This document shows positions 4,357 to 62,963 of a DNA stretch of 64,000 nucleotides, piece by piece. Position numbers and translations under genes: made by a program. The notes beneath the pieces were generated by a model that was not told the DNA's origin, did not search any database, and saw only the letters and a program-made list of their open reading frames with translations. Position 1 is the stretch's first letter, and each line of letters opens with the position of its first letter. Origin of the DNA: Epithemia pelagica (lineage: Eukaryota > Protista > Bacillariophyta); the NCBI GenBank assembly GCA_946965045.2, contig OX337230.1, positions 3,038,001 to 3,102,000 of the forward strand. The letters run 5' to 3'.

Positions 4357-5055
4357 ATGAGTAAAGAGGGCACGAGTGACCGCGTACAATCTTTATTATC
4401 GGAACTGGCCCAACTCACTATCGAACAAGAGGATCTCTTACACGAAGCGGAACAGCGCTACCAACAACGCTTTCGCACCAAGGAGGCGCAGCATCGCGAG
4501 GCCATCGCTGCACTGGAGCGACAACGAGAAATCGAAAGAGACAACGATTACGAGGAAACGGAGATTCGGAAACAGCTGATCTTCGAGGAGATACAGGAAA
4601 AGCGACACACGTTGCTAGACAAAATCAAGCGGGCTGAGCGAGGCCCATCAACCTGCGCGACTACATACCCAGAGCACTCCGCTGAAGCGTATCTTGTGGA
4701 ACCGAACCAAGAAAACCCGAACCAAGAAAACAATTCGGAAGATAATCAAGAACGTCGCGCATCTACAGTCGCTCTCGTTGACCTGAGCCGAGAAACACCG
4801 GACGGTGAAATCGAAACAGAAACAATCATCCCCGCTATTCCACCACAAAGAGGCGTACTCCCACGGTGGATTCCAATTGGAACTCGCGTTTGGGTATTGA
4901 ATACTCTCAAGTTGAAGGAAACAGTGGGACGAACACATCTCCAAGGCACAGTGTCGCGCCACGGCACATTATATCACTTTATCAAGATTTGGAATCCCAT
5001 CACCAAAGATACAGAAGAACACCGCCGCCATCGTGACAGCATTGCGATTGTTTAA
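4357..5055 (+). CDS. Extra ORF upstream of gag: coiled-coil N-terminus plus a small predicted beta-rich (KOW/SH3-like) C-terminus
   Basis: A 232-aa ATG-initiated ORF inside the LTR-bounded unit, ending 5 bp before the gag ATG. The fold assignment is inference. Confidence 0.7.
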   Translation: MSKEGTSDRVQSLLSELAQLTIEQEDLLHEAEQRYQQRFRTKEAQHREAIAALERQREIERDNDYEETEIRKQLIFEEIQEKRHTLLDKIKRAERGPSTCATTYPEHSAEAYLVEPNQENPNQENNSEDNQERRASTVALVDLSRETPDGEIETETIIPAIPPQRGVLPRWIPIGTRVWVLNTLKLKETVGRTHLQGTVSRHGTLYHFIKIWNPITKDTEEHRRHRDSIAIV

Positions 5056-5060
5056 ACGAG

Positions 5061-8000
5061 ATGTCTCAACAAGACAACGCAAATCGTCCAGACACGGTTG
5101 AGTCTAGCTCCCGGTCGAGTGGACAACGTCAAGGCAGAGGTGGACGTGGAAGAGGACGAGGATGGCAGAATCAGGCTCAACAATCCAACTCGCCTAGATT
5201 TCAAGGCCAAGAACCATCGCTTAAAGAATGCATATTCGACTACAGTGAGGATCCGCAATCGAAGCGCTATCTACAAAACGTCGAGTTATTGATCGGCTAC
5301 GTCGGTAGTAATTTTGATCGACACAATCAAGAGTTCCAACAAGCACTCGAAGCATTGGAACTACCCGACCCAGAAGAAGCAACAAAACCAAAAGACCCCA
5401 CAGATATGATCCAAGTGGAAGAGTGGAAGATGGCGTACAAAGCACGCCAAGATCAAATGGTCCTTTACAAAAACTTTCGGGCAGCTCTATACAGCTTGAT
5501 TATGGGACAGTGTACTCCGCTACTCAAGGATAAGCTACAGGCCCACGAGACCTTTGGAGAGATCAAGAAGATGCGTGACGGTGTGGATCTCTTGAAACTT
5601 ATCAAGCAAATCACATTCACCTTTGATTCCGGACGCATATTCACTCTTGTCGCCCGAGATAAGCTCAAGGAAGATTTCTATAGTCTGAGGCGACGAAATA
5701 ATCAAAGCCTCCATTCCTATTACGAGGTATTCCGAGCCAAAGTCAAGGTCATGAATGAAGCCGGGATTGTCCTGTACGATAAGGACATGTTGGAACGAGT
5801 GGCGAAGGAAAAGAAACACACAACACCTTCTTCCGACGACCACGAGGACGCCCAAAATGGTTGTATTGCCATTCGATTCATCCGATCTTGTGGCAACAAG
5901 GAGTACGAAGCACATTTGCAAAATATGTTCTTGGATGGACAGAATGTATACCCCAAGACGCTTGCCAATGCTCGTGCGATCCTGGACAATCGAATGACAG
6001 GAAAACCAAAGAACAATCCTGGTCAGAGCAACGGTCAGCCCGACAACGCCACCGGTGTGGCGTATGTAACAAGTGGAGAGACGAGTTTGCCCGATTCCAC
6101 CATGACAGGCCACTCCAATGCGACAACTGCAACAGGAGCACATGCAAGTGGCTCCCAAGCCTCGACAACACAGAGTCGCTCAAATCGAACCAACTCACAA
6201 GCCGAGGGTAACAATGAATCCAATCGAGGTGTGCTAACCTCATCAAACAGGGGCTCAACCGTCAACTGCGACTCACCTAATTATGCTTTCTCTTCCTCTA
6301 CCATGCAGGCTAGCATTCCCCCTCAATGACTGTTACTGGACAATCAGTCCACCGTTGACATCATCAAAGATCCATCCTTATTAAAAAATATTCACTCGTC
6401 TGAGACTCCCATCGTCATTCAGAGTCATGCCGGACAGAGGACTCTTCAGTTGCGAGGACTCCTGCCTGGATATGGCATCGTATGGCATGATCCTGAGGGT
6501 CCAGCCAACATCATCTCCCTAAACAACGCACACACAAGATTTCACATCAAATATGACAGCGACCGTGGAAATTCATTTGCCTTACATGACCGAGCCACTG
6601 GTAGGCTAAAACACAAGTTCAATCCAAGCCCAGAAGGTTTATTCTACCTGGATACATCGACGTTACAGAGTAGCTTCGTAACAACTGTTAGCGAAAACGA
6701 AGATTCTTACTCCCCGGAAGAAATTCGTAGAGCCAAGCTGGCCAGATCACTCCTAGCGAAGATAGGACGGCCTTCTACTAAGGATTATCTTCATATCCTA
6801 AGGCACAACCTACTACCAAACGCTAACATTACTACTGACGATGTATACAGGGCCGAGAAGATCTACGGACCAGATTTGGGAACGCTCAAAGGCAAGACAA
6901 CGAGACGTAAGTCCCCATTTGTCGACACGTCCACGACAGTACCACCTCGTATTGCTGAGAAGCACAAGGATGTCACATTGACCATTGACGTCATGCACGT
7001 GAACAATGTACCATTCCTTGTCACCACGTCAAGGAAAATACATTTCGGGACGATAGACGCCATACAATCAACCACTGACACCAATATCATACAATCCCTG
7101 AAGAAGACTGTGGCAGTTTACCGACGTGGCGGGATTAGACCGAGAATTGTGTTGGCTGATGGTGCATTTACAAGTGATGATATGCAAGCCAGTCTTCAAC
7201 TGCTCGGCATCACCATCAATCCCACTGTCAGGGACGAGCATGTAGGTGATGTGGAACGTTACATCAGGACTGTGAAGGAGAGGATGCGCTGTGTTTATAA
7301 CACGCTTCCTTTCGATGCCCTACCGAAGGTCATGTTGATAGAACTGGCCAAATTTGCCACGTTTTGGTTTGATCCTGCGTCTAGAAGGTGACCCAATGAT
7401 GCATCTGTGGTGGTGGGTTGACGCATCTTATGCGACTCACCCCGATCTAAAAGGACACACTGGGGGTTTCATGACCATGGGAAAAGGAGCAGTGGTGACG
7501 GCTTCATCGAAACAAAAACTCGTGGCCCGTAGTTCAACTGAATGTGAACTCATTGGGGTACACGATGTACTCCCGTCTATCATCTGGACCAAGAATTTCA
7601 TACAGGCCCAAGGCCATGAGATCAAGGACGTAACCCTACATCAAGACAATCAGAGTAGTATTCTATTGGCGAAAAATGGACGGCTATCCAGTTCGAAGCG
7701 AACCAAACATATCAACCTTCGCTACTTTTATATCACGGACTGCATCAAGCGCAAAGAAATGGATATTGCATTCTGTCCGACTGAAGAGATGGTCGCCGAT
7801 TTTTTTACCAAGCCATTACAAGGTCGCATCTTCTACCAATTGCGTGATATCATCATGAATGTACCATCGGATAGTAAATATCATTCCTCGGCACAAAGGA
7901 GTGTGTTGAGGATAGCAGAGCAACCGGTGAATATAGAGGACCAAGGTGCGACTGGCCATTCGCAAGATATAGGCCATTCGCAAGATGCGGAATCATGGAC

Positions 8001-57004: not shown

Positions 57005-57813
57005 CGACCTAGTGTCGCTAGCTTTCACCTTTGTTAGTCCTCGCGTATGTTCTTACATATGCCCGGCGCGTCGGTCGGCGTTTCCCCTGAGTGGGTACGT
57101 GCGGCAGCGTTATAATAGATTCAATTTTTTTTTTTTTGTCGGGTCGGGAAGAACCGACACGTGGGTACAACGAACGTCGTGGGACTGAATCATCGACTCC
57201 TCAGCTTCTGGGACTGATATAGAGTGTGGCGTACTGTGCAACTTCCCGAGAAGATTCGTTCAAGAAGGAAGTACACTTTGAGCCCACCATCTGCAAACAA
57301 CTGCACCACACCCTGCCCGGGAAAGCAGAGAGCCTTTCGTTTGATGTTCAACACCGCCTACGAACGACTGTTTTTTTTTCCTTCTCCTCGATCAATCGAT
57401 CGTCATTAGAGATTTGGTCTCTACGGTAGAAGCACTGTACAAAAAATCAAAGAAACATCGTTCATTCATCTACCTCCGACAACACTCAAAGGTTGCTTCT
57501 GCTCTAGAGGAAGAGTGACACACGAGTGCCACTCCAGATGCAACAAAAGGTCGCTTGGTAGTCAATCTTCTTTCGATGAATTGCTCTGCTTCCAAACAAT
57601 CTCAGTACTTTATTTGCATCGCTTCCAACTCCATCCGGAATAGTATAACCTACACATCAACGCAATTTCATCAGGACAATGATACAGCAGTTGTCGTCAT
57701 CATCCCCCTACCCTTCTGAATCTCTTTCGAAAACAACCAACAGACTCGAGGAGGGCGTTAACAATCGCATCGTTTCGCCTCTAGACCACAGCTCCGTCTC
57801 TCGGAGAATCTCT

Positions 57814-60723
57814 ATGACAAGCCGAAAAATTTGTGTAAACTGGGCTCTGCTTGGATTTGTTGTGACATCAATGATCATGAGCTGGGGACGAGGAGGAGTG
57901 GTGTCGGCCTTTACCAATGTGGCTTATCCTTCTGCGAAATGGATTCTACAACGAACTGTATCGGGAACCTCCTCTTGTGGGAAATACGGTCCCTCCCCAG
58001 TCATTCGCATCACACCTGGGGTCAGTCCATTGTGTACAACTCATGCAAGTAGAGGTATGAGCACTGTTCTCCAAATGGCAACCTGCTCTCGAGAACTCCG
58101 ATTTCTTGGCGGTCGAGGTGCCTGTACTACCGCTGCAGCTGCAGTGGTTACTTCCACATCCTGGAAGACGACGACCAAGGTTACCGATGGGCAAGCCTCA
58201 ACAACATCTCATCCACAGGCAGTTTCCGCTTCCTCTTCGGCCTTTCATCAACAAGAAACCTCATCGTGGTTCTTGTCACAAACTTCGTTGCATCACGGCG
58301 ATGAGACCCCGTTGTCCGTCGATCATGCGGTGGCAGTGCAAAGTCCTCCCAGTAGCGGTATGTCCATTTTGACAGCAGCAGCAACCGCAACGAAAACAAC
58401 GTCGGTGATGAGTGGAGACGGTGACAGCGCTGCCTTGGCCTCACAGACTATTGGAACGGCCACGGCTACCATCACTGCCACCTCGATGCGAGTCGGACCC
58501 TGCATGGCCACAACCAATGCCATTTTTCGAAGTTTTTCGTCCTCTTCGCATGACGGACAAGGCTCTTCCGAAACGTCACTGAATGAAAGTGGCCAAAGCT
58601 CGCCAGTGACGGAATCCAACCAGCAAGCCATGATGACCCATGAGTCCTTGTCCATGTCTACTCGCAGTCGGCCCGTGTCAGAAGGATACGGTTCGAGTCT
58701 CGAATTGACCGAGGAGGAGCGTCAACTTTTTGCCTTGTTGCGTCGTGTTCGCAAGGAAACTAATCTATCGACAACCTTGCGTGTTGCTGGTGGATGGGTC
58801 CGAGACAAACTCTTGGCTACACCAGAATTTCGTCCTCAAGTCTATGGTCCTTCCAATGATGACGACAACCGCGCGACCACGGCCAAACCACAACGACTTA
58901 CTTCCAAATTCTTGCGTCGAAGGGCCAGTGCCGTATCATCCTCGGCAACGTCCTCATCGGCTGCCAACACGCTCATGGCCAATTCACCAAGCCAAAAACC
59001 TGTTGATATTGACATTGCCTTGGATGATATGTTGGGTCAAGAGTTTGCAGAACATTTGAATGATTACCTGTCCTCTCAAGGCGAGGAGACACATTCCGTC
59101 GGTGTGGTTCTCAAGAATCCAGAGAAATCCAAGCACTTGGAAACAGCCACCATGAAAGTTGAAGGCTTTTGGATTGATTTTGTCAATTTACGAGCCGAAG
59201 AATACACTCAAGAAAATTCCCGAATCCCCGACATGATGCGGATTGGAACCGCCTCAGAAGATGCCTATCGACGCGATTTGACCATTAACTCCTTGTTTTA
59301 CAATGTGAATACGGGACAAGTGGAAGATTGGACTGGACAAGGGTTTGAAGATTTGCGCAAGGGTGTAGTTGCGACTCCTCTGCCACCATTGACCACCTTA
59401 TTGGACGATCCCTTGCGTGTGTTGCGGAGTGTCCGGTTTGCCGCGCGATTGCGCTTCACCATGGCGGGCAATTTGGTAGAAGCGGCAAAAGATGTACGTG
59501 TACGAACCGCCTTGGCCAACAAGGTGTCACGAGAACGTGTAGGGAGTGAAGTTGAGCTCATGTTCCGATCGCGCGATCCAGTGGGAGCTATGCGATTGCT
59601 GTGGCAATTGCAATTGATGGATACCGTCTTTCCACAAATGCCAACGGGGGAACAAGGTTTGGCCCTGTTGTCAACGGCACATGATCATTTGGCCGATTGC
59701 AAATTCTCTCCACCCCAATGGTGCAGTGTACTAAAACCCAGCAACGACCAAACGGAGGCTTCTGCTTCCGCAGTCGCTGCGCTTGCTGTTGCCAGTGGTT
59801 TACCTTTGCTAGAAGATGATGAAGGTCGTCGATTGCTCTGGTACAGTGCGTTTTTGAAACCACTGTGGAATTTCCAAAAGCAACAAAGTAGTGGTGAAGA
59901 GGGAAAAACGGGCGCAAGACAATCCAAAAAGAAGCGAAAGCACCAGTCGGCGGTTCATCGATTGCTTCTGGATGAGCTGAAGCGTCCAGCTCGTGATGCC
60001 GATGCCATTGCCAAAATCCTTGCTGCTGCGGATGAAATCACGGAAATGATGCAAAATGGAAGCGTGGTTTCGGCCACAATGATTCTGTTGAGCGATCTCA
60101 ATATTCGACAAGAATTGGAGATTCCCACCGACCATAAGAACGAAAATAATGGTGAACCTCCTCAGTCTACCGTGGCTTTGTATCCCATTTTGAATGGACG
60201 ACGAGTGGATCCTACCGTGGAAGAAGACCCCGTCTGGATTCATGCCATGGAATTCCGATTGACGTGTTTCAAAATGCTGCAGAAGATTGGCCCCCTATGG
60301 AGAGCTGCGTTAATATTGTCGCTTTCGGAGGAGCTGAACAATGCTACAACTCAATGGCAGTCTTCCTCATCCCAATATGGCGACTCTGCTTCTTCGTTGG
60401 ATTATGCCATTGAAGGCGATGTGGTCGATGAAACGCAGGAAGAATTACGGCGTGGGATCATTGAACGGTACGACATTTTTGCTGCTACCCTGCTTCGGTT
60501 GGGTTTGATTGGAAGTTGGGAAACCACGAAGCCATTGCTGGATGGTGGTGCTGTGAAAAAGATTTTGACCAACATTCCCAAAGGTCCGGCCTTTCGGCAA
60601 GTAGTTGAGGAACAAATGGATTGGATCGTGACACATCCCGGTGTTGTGGATGAGGAGGCATTGGCCATTCATTTGAAACTTGTCTTTCCTGACTATTGTA
60701 GTCCCGACAAGGAAGATCCTTGA
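57814..60723 (+). CDS. CCA1: CCA-adding tRNA nucleotidyltransferase (class II) with a long targeting N-terminus
   Basis: LRVAGGWVRDKLL, DIDIAL, IDFVNLRAEEY, DAYRRDLTINSLFYN, DDPLRVLRSVRF and KVSRERVG. The start is chosen at MTSRK..., ahead of the signal peptide. Confidence 0.93.
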   Translation: MTSRKICVNWALLGFVVTSMIMSWGRGGVVSAFTNVAYPSAKWILQRTVSGTSSCGKYGPSPVIRITPGVSPLCTTHASRGMSTVLQMATCSRELRFLGGRGACTTAAAAVVTSTSWKTTTKVTDGQASTTSHPQAVSASSSAFHQQETSSWFLSQTSLHHGDETPLSVDHAVAVQSPPSSGMSILTAAATATKTTSVMSGDGDSAALASQTIGTATATITATSMRVGPCMATTNAIFRSFSSSSHDGQGSSETSLNESGQSSPVTESNQQAMMTHESLSMSTRSRPVSEGYGSSLELTEEERQLFALLRRVRKETNLSTTLRVAGGWVRDKLLATPEFRPQVYGPSNDDDNRATTAKPQRLTSKFLRRRASAVSSSATSSSAANTLMANSPSQKPVDIDIALDDMLGQEFAEHLNDYLSSQGEETHSVGVVLKNPEKSKHLETATMKVEGFWIDFVNLRAEEYTQENSRIPDMMRIGTASEDAYRRDLTINSLFYNVNTGQVEDWTGQGFEDLRKGVVATPLPPLTTLLDDPLRVLRSVRFAARLRFTMAGNLVEAAKDVRVRTALANKVSRERVGSEVELMFRSRDPVGAMRLLWQLQLMDTVFPQMPTGEQGLALLSTAHDHLADCKFSPPQWCSVLKPSNDQTEASASAVAALAVASGLPLLEDDEGRRLLWYSAFLKPLWNFQKQQSSGEEGKTGARQSKKKRKHQSAVHRLLLDELKRPARDADAIAKILAAADEITEMMQNGSVVSATMILLSDLNIRQELEIPTDHKNENNGEPPQSTVALYPILNGRRVDPTVEEDPVWIHAMEFRLTCFKMLQKIGPLWRAALILSLSEELNNATTQWQSSSSQYGDSASSLDYAIEGDVVDETQEELRRGIIERYDIFAATLLRLGLIGSWETTKPLLDGGAVKKILTNIPKGPAFRQVVEEQMDWIVTHPGVVDEEALAIHLKLVFPDYCSPDKEDP

Positions 60724-61547: not shown

Positions 61548-62046
61548 TTAAGGAGCACCGGCTGTTCCGGCGGAGTTGCTGCTCGAAGTACCTTGTTGTT
61601 TTGCAGAAGTGGGACCGGAAGAAGATGCAGCAGCTGCAGCCGAGGCTGGAGCATTCTCTTGTCGGGTGGCGTCTTGCAACAATTGCGTATCCACGTGTTC
61701 AGGTGGAATTTGAATGTACCGAACGACACTCCCACGGATAAAACACGTCTTGAGTGCAGTTAACTGGGGATACTTTTGGGGCTCGACTACACGGACTTCA
61801 ATTAACTTGACGTTCAAATATTGATCAACGGAATGCAAAATACCCGTCAACACGATATCATTTTTGAGCTCGACGGCAATCTCTTTTCCCACCAACGTTT
61901 TGAAGAAGGAAAGGAAAATCTGAGATTGACAAACAAATCAGAACAGAATGTAAAAGAATGCAGACTATGGTTAGATTTCGATCGATCACATCCTACATCA
62001 AATGGCGAAAGTGACAAAACAAGAAAGAAGACCACAAACCTACCAT
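61548..62046 (-). CDS. LSM2: U6 snRNA-associated Sm-like protein LSm2
   Basis: ATG-only first coding exon (62046-62044), intron 61920-62043, then IFLSFFKTLVGKEIAVELKND...LHSVDQYLNVKL...CFIRGSVVRY...VDTQLLQDATR. Confidence 0.96.
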
Positions 62047-62125
62047 GGTCGATGCTGCTTCCAATAGAGGATAAAAGACGATTCAACGTGAGGTCCAGAG
62101 TGAACGATACGTATCCCACTGGTTT

Positions 62126-62130
62126 TATAA
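62126..62130 (+). promoter_or_regulatory. TATA-like element upstream of the permuted tRNA
   Basis: TTTTATAAC lies about 35-40 nt upstream of the 3' half. Function is inferred. Confidence 0.5.
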
Positions 62131-62165
62131 CTAAAATTCGGCGAAAAGGATGACGTTCGAAAGTG

Positions 62166-62247
62166 AGCCGCTGGTCGCGAGTTCAAACCTCGCCTGGAGC
62201 AACGTCGTGAGCTCTTGTAACTCAGTGGTCAGAGTGGCGGTCTTATG
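62166..62247 (+). tRNA. Circularly permuted tRNA-Ile(UAU): 3' half 62166-62201, 9-nt linker, 5' half 62211-62247
   Basis: Joining the 5' half GCTCTTG-TA-ACTC-AGTGGTCA-GAGT-G-GCGGT-CT-TAT-G to the 3' half A-GCCGC-TGGTC-GCGAG-TTCAAAC-CTCGC-CTGGAGC-A gives a 73-nt cloverleaf. D and T stems are perfect, the anticodon stem has one G-U, and the acceptor stem has one G-U and one U-U. Confidence 0.88.
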
Positions 62248-62458
62248 GACTACGTCGACCACACCTTTTTTGCTTTTCCCCGTTCCATAGATATGCCTCT
62301 AGCTACTCTAGCTACGGAGGAACAAGATACTTCGTGAGCTCTTGTAACTCAGTGGTCAGAGTGGCGGTCTTATGGACTACGTCGACCACACCTTTTTTGC
62401 TTTTCCCCGTTCCATAGATATGCCTCTAGCTACTCTAGCTACGGAGGAACAAGATACT
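62205..62458 (+). repeat. Exact 127-bp tandem duplication carrying the tRNA 5' half and terminator
   Basis: 62205-62331 equals 62332-62458. The orphan 5' half lies at 62338-62374. Confidence 0.93.
62266..62271 (+). terminator. RNA polymerase III oligo-T terminator
   Basis: T6 run 18 nt after the 5' half, followed by a further T4. Confidence 0.8.
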
Positions 62459-62963
62459 CCTATCTTTGATTTACTTGCAATTTGCAATCAATCGAAAAAG
62501 CCATTTTCCGATCATATAGTTGGATGGAATAGAACTCTGGAGGTGGAGGGTGAAATGATGGGAGATGGGAGGGACGAATGATGTGAAAAATCAATTCTCC
62601 TTTCATCTTTTTGTCTTGTGTCTTGTACTCACAAGTAAAGCGGAGCGGGTTTGGCTACTCGTGACTGGATTTGATTTCGTCCAAGTGTTCTGTATTGAGT
62701 TACACCAGCCGAGAGTTAACTATGGGCTTACCGCTCGCGCTGGGGCGTTTCCATGGAGTGAAGTGACAACCTCCATCAAGGACGCGCCGCCGCCGCACCC
62801 CAACCAAACATGGCGAAATTCGGAAGCAGGTCATTTCGACGCGTCGTCGAAAGTTCGGATCCATCGTGCGTCCAGACCAATTTGCATTCCATTGGTTTGG
62901 ACCAACCCGTCGTCGTCCCTATCAATCACCGCTACTTGTTTCCTAACAAAGACTCCATATATC

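Follow-up and report, generated by a model that had tools for sequence, protein, structure and literature searches.

To our knowledge, reports of permuted tRNA genes have so far come from a single red alga, a handful of green algae, a nucleomorph of green-algal origin and one archaeon, and these lineages have no orthologous permuted gene in common. The 34 permuted genes tabulated in a 2014 review include no tRNA-Ile(UAU) and none from a diatom or other stramenopile (PMC3978253), and both a 2025 Auxenochlorella preprint and a 2026 review covering the tRNA genes of photosynthetic eukaryotes name permuted tRNAs only in red and green algae, the nucleomorph of chlorarachniophytes and archaea. The first-pass annotation of the locus described here was aware of no diatom example and left the point to a literature check; full-text literature searches, in which Maruyama et al. 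2010 was covered through the table of the 2014 review (PMC3978253), found no published case. Known permuted genes have an upstream TATA-like element, a T-stretch, an intervening sequence of 1-74 nt and a bulge-helix-bulge (BHB) at the junction (PMC3978253). In C. merolae, 6 of the 11 permuted genes are type II, and a circular intermediate has been shown experimentally (PMC3978253); the tRNA-Ile(UAU) gene of this alga is not permuted and contains three introns (PMC9602550).

The window analyzed here is a stretch of 64,000 nt (64 kb) of Epithemia pelagica DNA (GCA_946965045.2, contig OX337230.1, positions 3,038,001 to 3,102,000), near the end of which positions 38-73 of a tRNA lie 9 nt upstream of positions 1-37 on the + strand. 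From the sequence comparisons given below, this locus is very likely a functional, circularly permuted nuclear tRNA-Ile(UAU) gene of type II (37/38). It had been described at first pass as a 3' half placed before a 5' half with an intervening sequence between them, and every sequence statement of that description holds. The features of the locus, numbered from the first letter of the window, are:

61548-61895, - strand: main exon of LSM2 (PF01423 LSM; ORF at 61551-61895), head-to-head neighbour of the permuted gene
62123-62130, + strand: TATA-like upstream element TTTTATAA, with TATAA at 62126-62130, 40 nt ahead of the first coded tRNA base
62152-62165, + strand: leader GACGTTCGAAAGTG; GACGT (62152-62156) complements the trailer, and AAG (62161-62163) can pair with U34-U33-C32
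62166-62201, + strand: tRNA 3' half, positions 38-73 (anticodon-stem 3' strand, variable loop, T arm, acceptor 3' strand, discriminator A)
62202-62210, + strand: intervening sequence ACGTCGTGA of 9 nt between A73 and G1
62211-62247, + strand: tRNA 5' half, positions 1-37 (acceptor 5' strand, D arm, anticodon-stem 5' strand, CTTATG)
62248-62265, + strand: trailer GACTACGTCGACCACACC; ACGTC (62252-62256) pairs with leader GACGT
62266-62271, + strand: T6 run starting 19 nt past G37, a likely RNA polymerase III terminator
62329-62455, + strand: second copy of a 127-nt tandem duplication (first copy 62202-62328), with a spacer-like 9 nt, an orphan 5' half, the trailer, a T-run and 57 nt

The T arm of the 3' half contains GTTCAAACC (62181-62189), the D arm of the 5' half contains TAACTCAGTGG (62218-62228), and the anticodon TAT is at 62244-62246. 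No promoter-like or terminator-like signal is present in the 9-nt spacer between the halves. Further particulars of the first description were confirmed by reading the sequence: TG flanks the junction on both sides, leader AAG, leader GACGT and trailer ACGTC are all where they had been placed, and TATAA and the T6 run frame the unit. With AAG paired to U34-U33-C32, the leader U and G together with A38 form a 3-nt bulge at the 3' cut.

In layout, the diatom gene resembles the type II genes of prasinophytes (Ostreococcus, Micromonas) and of the Bigelowiella natans nucleomorph, which, as Maruyama et al. 2010 is summarized in the 2014 review (PMC3978253), also place the 3' half first, on one strand, with the junction at 37/38. 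The intervening sequence is short in both groups (5-64 nt in the prasinophyte and Bigelowiella type II genes of that summary vs. 7-9 nt in diatoms), and the leader and trailer of both can form a BHB-like motif (PMC3978253). Even the extra 5' half downstream, as in the window, has a counterpart in the permuted Cys(GCA) gene of O. lucimarinus (PMC3978253). The diatom gene is unlike the prasinophyte and Bigelowiella genes in its stramenopile host and its isoacceptor, Ile(UAU), and in being one orthologous gene kept beside LSM2 across two raphid pennate orders. With the permuted genes of C. merolae it shares a TATA-like promoter within 50 bp upstream, a T-stretch terminator, a signal-free intervening sequence and a BHB at the junction (PMC3978253). 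However, C. merolae also has D- and T-loop junctions and extra introns.

Two kinds of tRNA gene that are not permuted also invite comparison. Canonical intron-containing tRNA-Ile(UAU) genes, such as that of yeast, encode the same isoacceptor and are broken at the same place (37/38), and the diatom leader and trailer can mimic the intron, including the C32 pair and the 3-nt bulge at the 3' splice site. In contrast to the canonical gene, the exon order of the diatom gene is inverted and its A and B boxes are reversed; given this inversion, splicing has to ligate the two ends of the transcript to each other instead of excising an internal piece. The split tRNAs of Nanoarchaeum equitans and Caldivirga are likewise assembled from halves via a BHB-type helix and splicing endonuclease. 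Split halves, however, are separate genes with their own promoters, whereas the diatom halves are 9 nt apart with a signal-free sequence between them and do not form a split gene. Because they are so close and lack intervening signals, the diatom halves are taken to lie on a single transcript.

ARAGORN found zero tRNAs in the native 64-kb window, in keeping with the claim that standard tRNA scans would miss the gene. With the halves joined at 37/38, it returned the 73-nt cloverleaf that had been proposed, a tRNA-Ile(tat) with a single U6.U67 mismatch, in which U8, the D-loop GG, U33 and the T-loop GTTCAAA can be read directly. Every 170-nt segment of the window was also concatenated to itself and scanned with ARAGORN allowing introns; this duplicate-and-scan procedure gave a junction-spanning call at the permuted locus only. 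Since no other locus in the window was called, a chance origin of the permuted tRNA call is excluded. A search of the whole window allowing up to five substitutions recovered one 3' half and two 5' halves and no others; as had been asserted, no 5' half lies upstream and no 3' half follows either 5' half. A conventional Ile-TAT gene was found neither in the 64-kb window nor in the fetched loci described below (≤20 kb each). A 14-nt inverted match at 62696-62709 was considered as the start of a minus-strand tRNA and rejected, as it has no D arm or further tRNA features.

Misassembly had been named at the outset as a possible source of the unusual order. Unitigs built from three DNA runs of the same organism bridge the 3'-to-5' junction for both alleles. 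One of 191 nt spans 62041-62234 (from the leader through the 3' half and spacer into the 5' half) and represents the other allele, with its eight differences from the window all upstream of 62146. Reads from a second organism gave a contig matching 62152-62247, in which the listed differences are confined to the spacer and divergence begins exactly after G37. The same permuted layout occurs in four independent assemblies, those of E. clementina, two close relatives and Mayamaea pseudoterrestris. The permuted order is not an assembly artefact; the unitigs and these four further assemblies exclude it.

The closest named relative of the window's LSM2 is that of Epithemia clementina (96% identity), followed by those of Entomoneis and Mayamaea, which places the window in a raphid pennate near Epithemia. 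DNA was fetched around the closest LSM2 genes, giving loci from E. clementina (L001, GCA_051400955.1), an ENA assembly (L002, whose trailer matches that of the second organism's read contig) and two haplotigs of a third assembly (L003 and L004). All four have an acyl-CoA dehydrogenase, the permuted tRNA, LSM2 and a PolyA_pol-family enzyme in this order, and all four have both halves 100% identical to those of the window, arranged as 3' half, 9 nt and 5' half. The unit at 62152-62247 is identical to the window at 94/96 and 92/96 positions in L001 and L002, respectively; the upstream, trailer and downstream flanks are 23-47% identical between the window and these two loci. The leader is near-invariant across three Epithemia-group species, with two of them showing one change each at the same leader position.

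The PolyA_pol-family gene of the window is a 1014-aa ORF at 57679-60723 (+ strand), ~1.5 kb from the permuted tRNA, with a PF01743 tRNA nucleotidyltransferase / poly(A) polymerase domain; judging from this domain, it possibly encodes a CCA-adding-type enzyme. The Epithemia-group loci keep this gene linked to LSM2 and the permuted tRNA, and the environmental locus L023 has the three linked in another order.

The tandem duplication places an orphan 5' half at 62338-62374, and the duplicated copy lacks both a 3' half and a TATA element. Haplotig L003 has the duplication; haplotig L004, E. clementina (L001) and L002 do not. The unitig at the duplication junction has approximately haploid depth and the 5'-half unitig ~3x haploid depth, which fits a heterozygous duplication on one haplotype only. 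Being heterozygous and species-specific, the duplication is recent, and it and its orphan 5' half are probably inert. The duplication was also considered as a relic of the gene's origin; its restriction to one haplotype of one species led us to reject this.

Could the whole locus be a decaying relic (pseudogene) of a rearranged or tandemly duplicated intron-containing tRNA-Ile gene, or else an artefact of assembly? The duplication, with its orphan 5' half directly adjacent to the permuted gene, would suit such an origin, as would an environmental variant (L009/L012, below) with a defective anticodon stem and no TATA box. The explanation is nevertheless scarcely credible: the halves are 100% identical across three species vs. 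23-47% identity in the flanks, compensatory substitutions occur across 13 sequences (below), the order is the same in independent assemblies and in unitigs of both alleles, and the duplication does not extend beyond the one haplotype of one species.

Relatives of the permuted gene were also sought among metagenome contigs. An exact-sequence scan of these contigs for the junction gave zero matches. A relaxed pattern (T loop to GAGCA, 1-30 nt, then GCTC...CTTAT) matched 15 metagenome loci, 11 of which are permuted with 7-9-nt spacers (L005, L007-L012, L014-L016, L018); the other four (L006/L017, L013, L019) are ordinary contiguous tRNA clusters that were set aside as not permuted and used as controls. 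The relaxed pattern also matches the locus of Mayamaea pseudoterrestris (L020, GCA_027923505.1), which was fetched via its LSM2 gene. The spacer is 7-9 nt in every member of the family and variable in sequence. Altogether, the permuted layout is found in at least 10 distinct environmental contig lineages, mostly head-to-head with LSM2.

Synteny beside LSM2, which the first-pass annotation had put forward as a check, is kept in Epithemia, Mayamaea and environmental contigs. LSM2 adjoins the permuted gene in L001-L004, L008, L010, L011, L015, L016, L020 and L023/L024 (by tblastn for L008, L010, L011, L015, L016 and L020). Among LSM2 loci, those of Skeletonema potamos, S. marinoi, Mediolabrus comicus and the environmental contig L025/L026 have no permuted gene near LSM2. 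On a short LSM2 tree, the sole well-supported split (100/99) sets the three Thalassiosirales (the two Skeletonema species and Mediolabrus) apart from all LSM2-linked permuted loci, which group with Epithemia, Entomoneis and Mayamaea; the environmental contigs were placed taxonomically by LSM2 similarity alone. NCBI taxonomy assigns Epithemia to the Surirellales and Mayamaea to the Sellaphorales, which are distinct orders of the Bacillariophycidae.

Some environmental loci depart from the common arrangement. The pennate-like contig L025/L026 (~5001-5525) has LSM2 linked to ATG11, as in Mayamaea, and a lipase gene upstream of LSM2 in place of the permuted tRNA; this gene arrangement points to loss or relocation of the permuted gene in some lineages. 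L009 (3978-4058) and L012 (5316-5396), from microbial-mat and other metagenomes, contain a permuted Ile(UAU)-like unit without a TATA box, leader-trailer helix or nearby LSM2. Its anticodon stem is defective (strand 39-43 matches 27-31 only if a 7-nt variable loop is assumed), and the unit is possibly a pseudogene or a divergent lineage. L005 (1415-1494) and L014 (950-1029), both from one metagenome assembly, have identical halves and trailer but differ in leader and spacer; neither the AAGU motif nor a TATA box is present in L005, and the two may be paralogues or include a recombinant copy.

For covariation, 13 distinct units were aligned in genomic (permuted) order and their pairs counted. 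Standard pairs fill 91.7% of cells; shifting the partners by 1-3 columns lowers this to 31-54%. The anticodon stem, whose two strands sit at opposite ends of the unit, one per half, pairs in 100% of cells and shows compensatory substitutions at 27:43 and 28:42. Three pairs covary in the T stem; in the acceptor stem, pair 5:68 is G.U in some units and C:G in others. None of the 13 units departs from the CUUAUGA loop, and each retains the four cloverleaf arms. The acceptor mismatch U6.U67 is also invariant (13/13; alignment columns 59 and 38); it counts against a functional reading of the gene, and it may have a role in the identity or processing of this tRNA.

This covariation bears on another interpretation, in which the locus is a conserved non-coding tRNA-like element and makes no translating tRNA, either a permuted RNA of the Y-RNA/YrlA type or a boundary or promoter element for LSM2 bound by Pol III/TFIIIC. 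The sole Rfam match at E up to 10 is indeed to the bacterial Y RNA-like family YrlA (RF02553, 28.1 bits, E = 0.003, 62150-62261), with no tRNA half reported at that threshold, and the tight head-to-head linkage to LSM2 is conserved. But 28.1 bits is far under the family's gathering score of 69, and the match is explained by the order of T arm, acceptor and D arm that the permuted tRNA has in common with the tRNA-like module of YrlA. A boundary element, moreover, would have no need of a covarying anticodon stem, an invariant CUUAUGA loop and four cloverleaf arms, nor of a matched leader-trailer helix with a bulge at the splice site. We consider a non-coding element of either kind very improbable. 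Sub-threshold YrlA matches in eukaryotes might serve as a cheap flag for permuted tRNA genes.

The leader ends in a conserved A-A-G-U-N. Pairing to C32 is possible for G-3 in 12/13 sequences, to U33 for A-4 in 13/13 and to U34 for position -5 in 11/13; U-2, N-1 and A38 then bulge out at the 3' cut (3 nt), in the same geometry as the eukaryotic anticodon-intron pair. The C32:G pair and 3-nt bulge originally noted in the window alone are kept across the family (G-3, 12/13; A-4, 13/13). Outward of this motif, each locus has a leader-trailer helix of 4-9 bp with its own sequence (e.g., ACCATCG/CGATGGT in L008 and ACTCCGG/CCGGAGT in L010); the trailer diverges between species yet stays complementary to its own leader. 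Cognate leader-trailer duplexes average -6.9 kcal/mol vs. -3.9 kcal/mol for non-cognate ones (permutation test on cognate pairing, p ~5e-5 for 13 loci and p = 9.5e-4 for nine unrelated representatives).

The BHB of permuted tRNA genes is present in relaxed form. In the window it is relaxed rather than strict, with a 3-bp central helix, an internal loop and a 5-bp outer helix; by manual reading, the geometry is nearer to a strict hBHBh' in L002, L011, L015 and L018. The relaxed geometry in the window counts against the functional reading, as do two results of folding. The unconstrained precursor fold is no more stable than those of shuffled sequences (z = 0.33), and when the cloverleaf alone is constrained, the energy minimum often favours an extended anticodon stem (A38:U33, U-2:A35) over C32:G-3. 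The variability of position -1 (including C) and the conservation of A-4 and position -5 favour the bulged model.

Signals for transcription flank the family members as well. In 12 of 17 permuted loci, A38 is preceded at 39-53 nt (mostly 40-47 nt) by a TATA-like motif, which among the Epithemia-group loci is conserved as GGTTATATA; all 17 loci have a run of T4-7 that begins 9-19 nt past G37. The conserved leader block of the Epithemia group starts ~27 nt past the TATA box, a distance that fits a transcription start at the beginning of this block. The tRNA genes of P. tricornutum are reported to have an AT-rich box at -30 to -40 (PMC3531208). The promoter and terminator features expected of a permuted tRNA gene are all present: the upstream TATA-like box, the T-stretch after the 5' half and the signal-free spacer. 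One metatranscriptome that was searched contained no sequence matching the stretch.

Gene order in reads and assemblies, conservation of the unit, linkage to LSM2, compensatory changes and leader-trailer helices all argue for the functional 37/38 permuted gene proposed at first pass, which would probably be matured by splicing endonuclease and ligase through a circle. We infer transcription, the enzymes, the order of steps and the circle as follows. RNA polymerase III would start ~25-30 nt downstream of the TATA-like box, near 62152, and make a single RNA of leader, 3' half, 9-nt spacer, 5' half and trailer, stopping at the T6 run. This RNA would fold into the cloverleaf, with the acceptor stem closed by the spacer loop and the anticodon stem formed where the first bases of the 3' half meet the last bases of the 5' half; the leader would pair with the trailer and with C32-U34 to give a relaxed, intron-like bulge-helix-bulge. 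The tRNA splicing endonuclease would cut after G37 and before A38, and tRNA ligase would join G37 to A38, with the predicted junction reading ...GGUCUUAUG followed directly by AGCCGCUGG... The ligation product would most likely be an 82-nt circle, by analogy with C. merolae, from which RNase P and tRNase Z would remove the spacer before CCA addition. Homologues of Trl1-type ligases have been reported in diatoms (PMC4090602).

The same gene and product would result if maturation proceeded without a circle, with RNase P and tRNase Z excising the 7-9-nt spacer first to leave two paired halves, after which the endonuclease would trim the leader and trailer and the ligase would join G37 to A38. The sequence does not fix the order of steps, and both sets of sites are available together in the folded precursor. 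A 7-9-nt loop between A73 and G1 would, on the other hand, be a poor substrate mimic for enzymes that normally meet free leader and trailer strands. Archaeal split tRNAs are joined in this circle-free manner, but circular intermediates were detected in C. merolae, the only system examined experimentally (PMC3978253). For the diatom gene we consider the circle-free route unlikely and prefer maturation through a circle.

In yeast, Pus1 makes Psi34 and Psi36 of tRNA-Ile(UAU) on the intron-containing precursor only, according to work cited in PMC9602550. Since yeast Pus1 needs that precursor, the leader-trailer pseudo-intron may serve these modifications in diatoms, and we speculate, by analogy, that it could preserve intron-dependent Psi34/Psi36. 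A wider proposal, which we advance tentatively and think somewhat more apt to be wrong than right, is that the permuted gene is the sole source of tRNA-Ile(UAU) in raphid pennates, became fixed a single time, head-to-head with LSM2, in the ancestor they share and has persisted since, with leader and trailer standing in for the universal Ile(UAU) intron so that Psi34/Psi36 are still made.

As a kind of gene, the permuted tRNA was already known from red and green algae; what is new is the diatom, and stramenopile, lineage. The retention of one permuted gene across the Surirellales, the Sellaphorales and many environmental relatives indicates that this layout can be stable over long evolutionary time. 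Standard tRNA finders miss the gene, which makes diatom tRNA sets look incomplete and affects analyses of AUA codons and their tRNA. tRNA-Ile(UAU) is the classic case of intron-dependent anticodon pseudouridines, and the diatom gene provides a natural test of whether a leader-trailer pseudo-intron supports anticodon pseudouridylation. If the wider proposal above held, diatoms would be a third lineage among the eukaryotic supergroups in which a permuted-tRNA pathway operates, and tRNA genes reported missing from diatom annotations would be explained.
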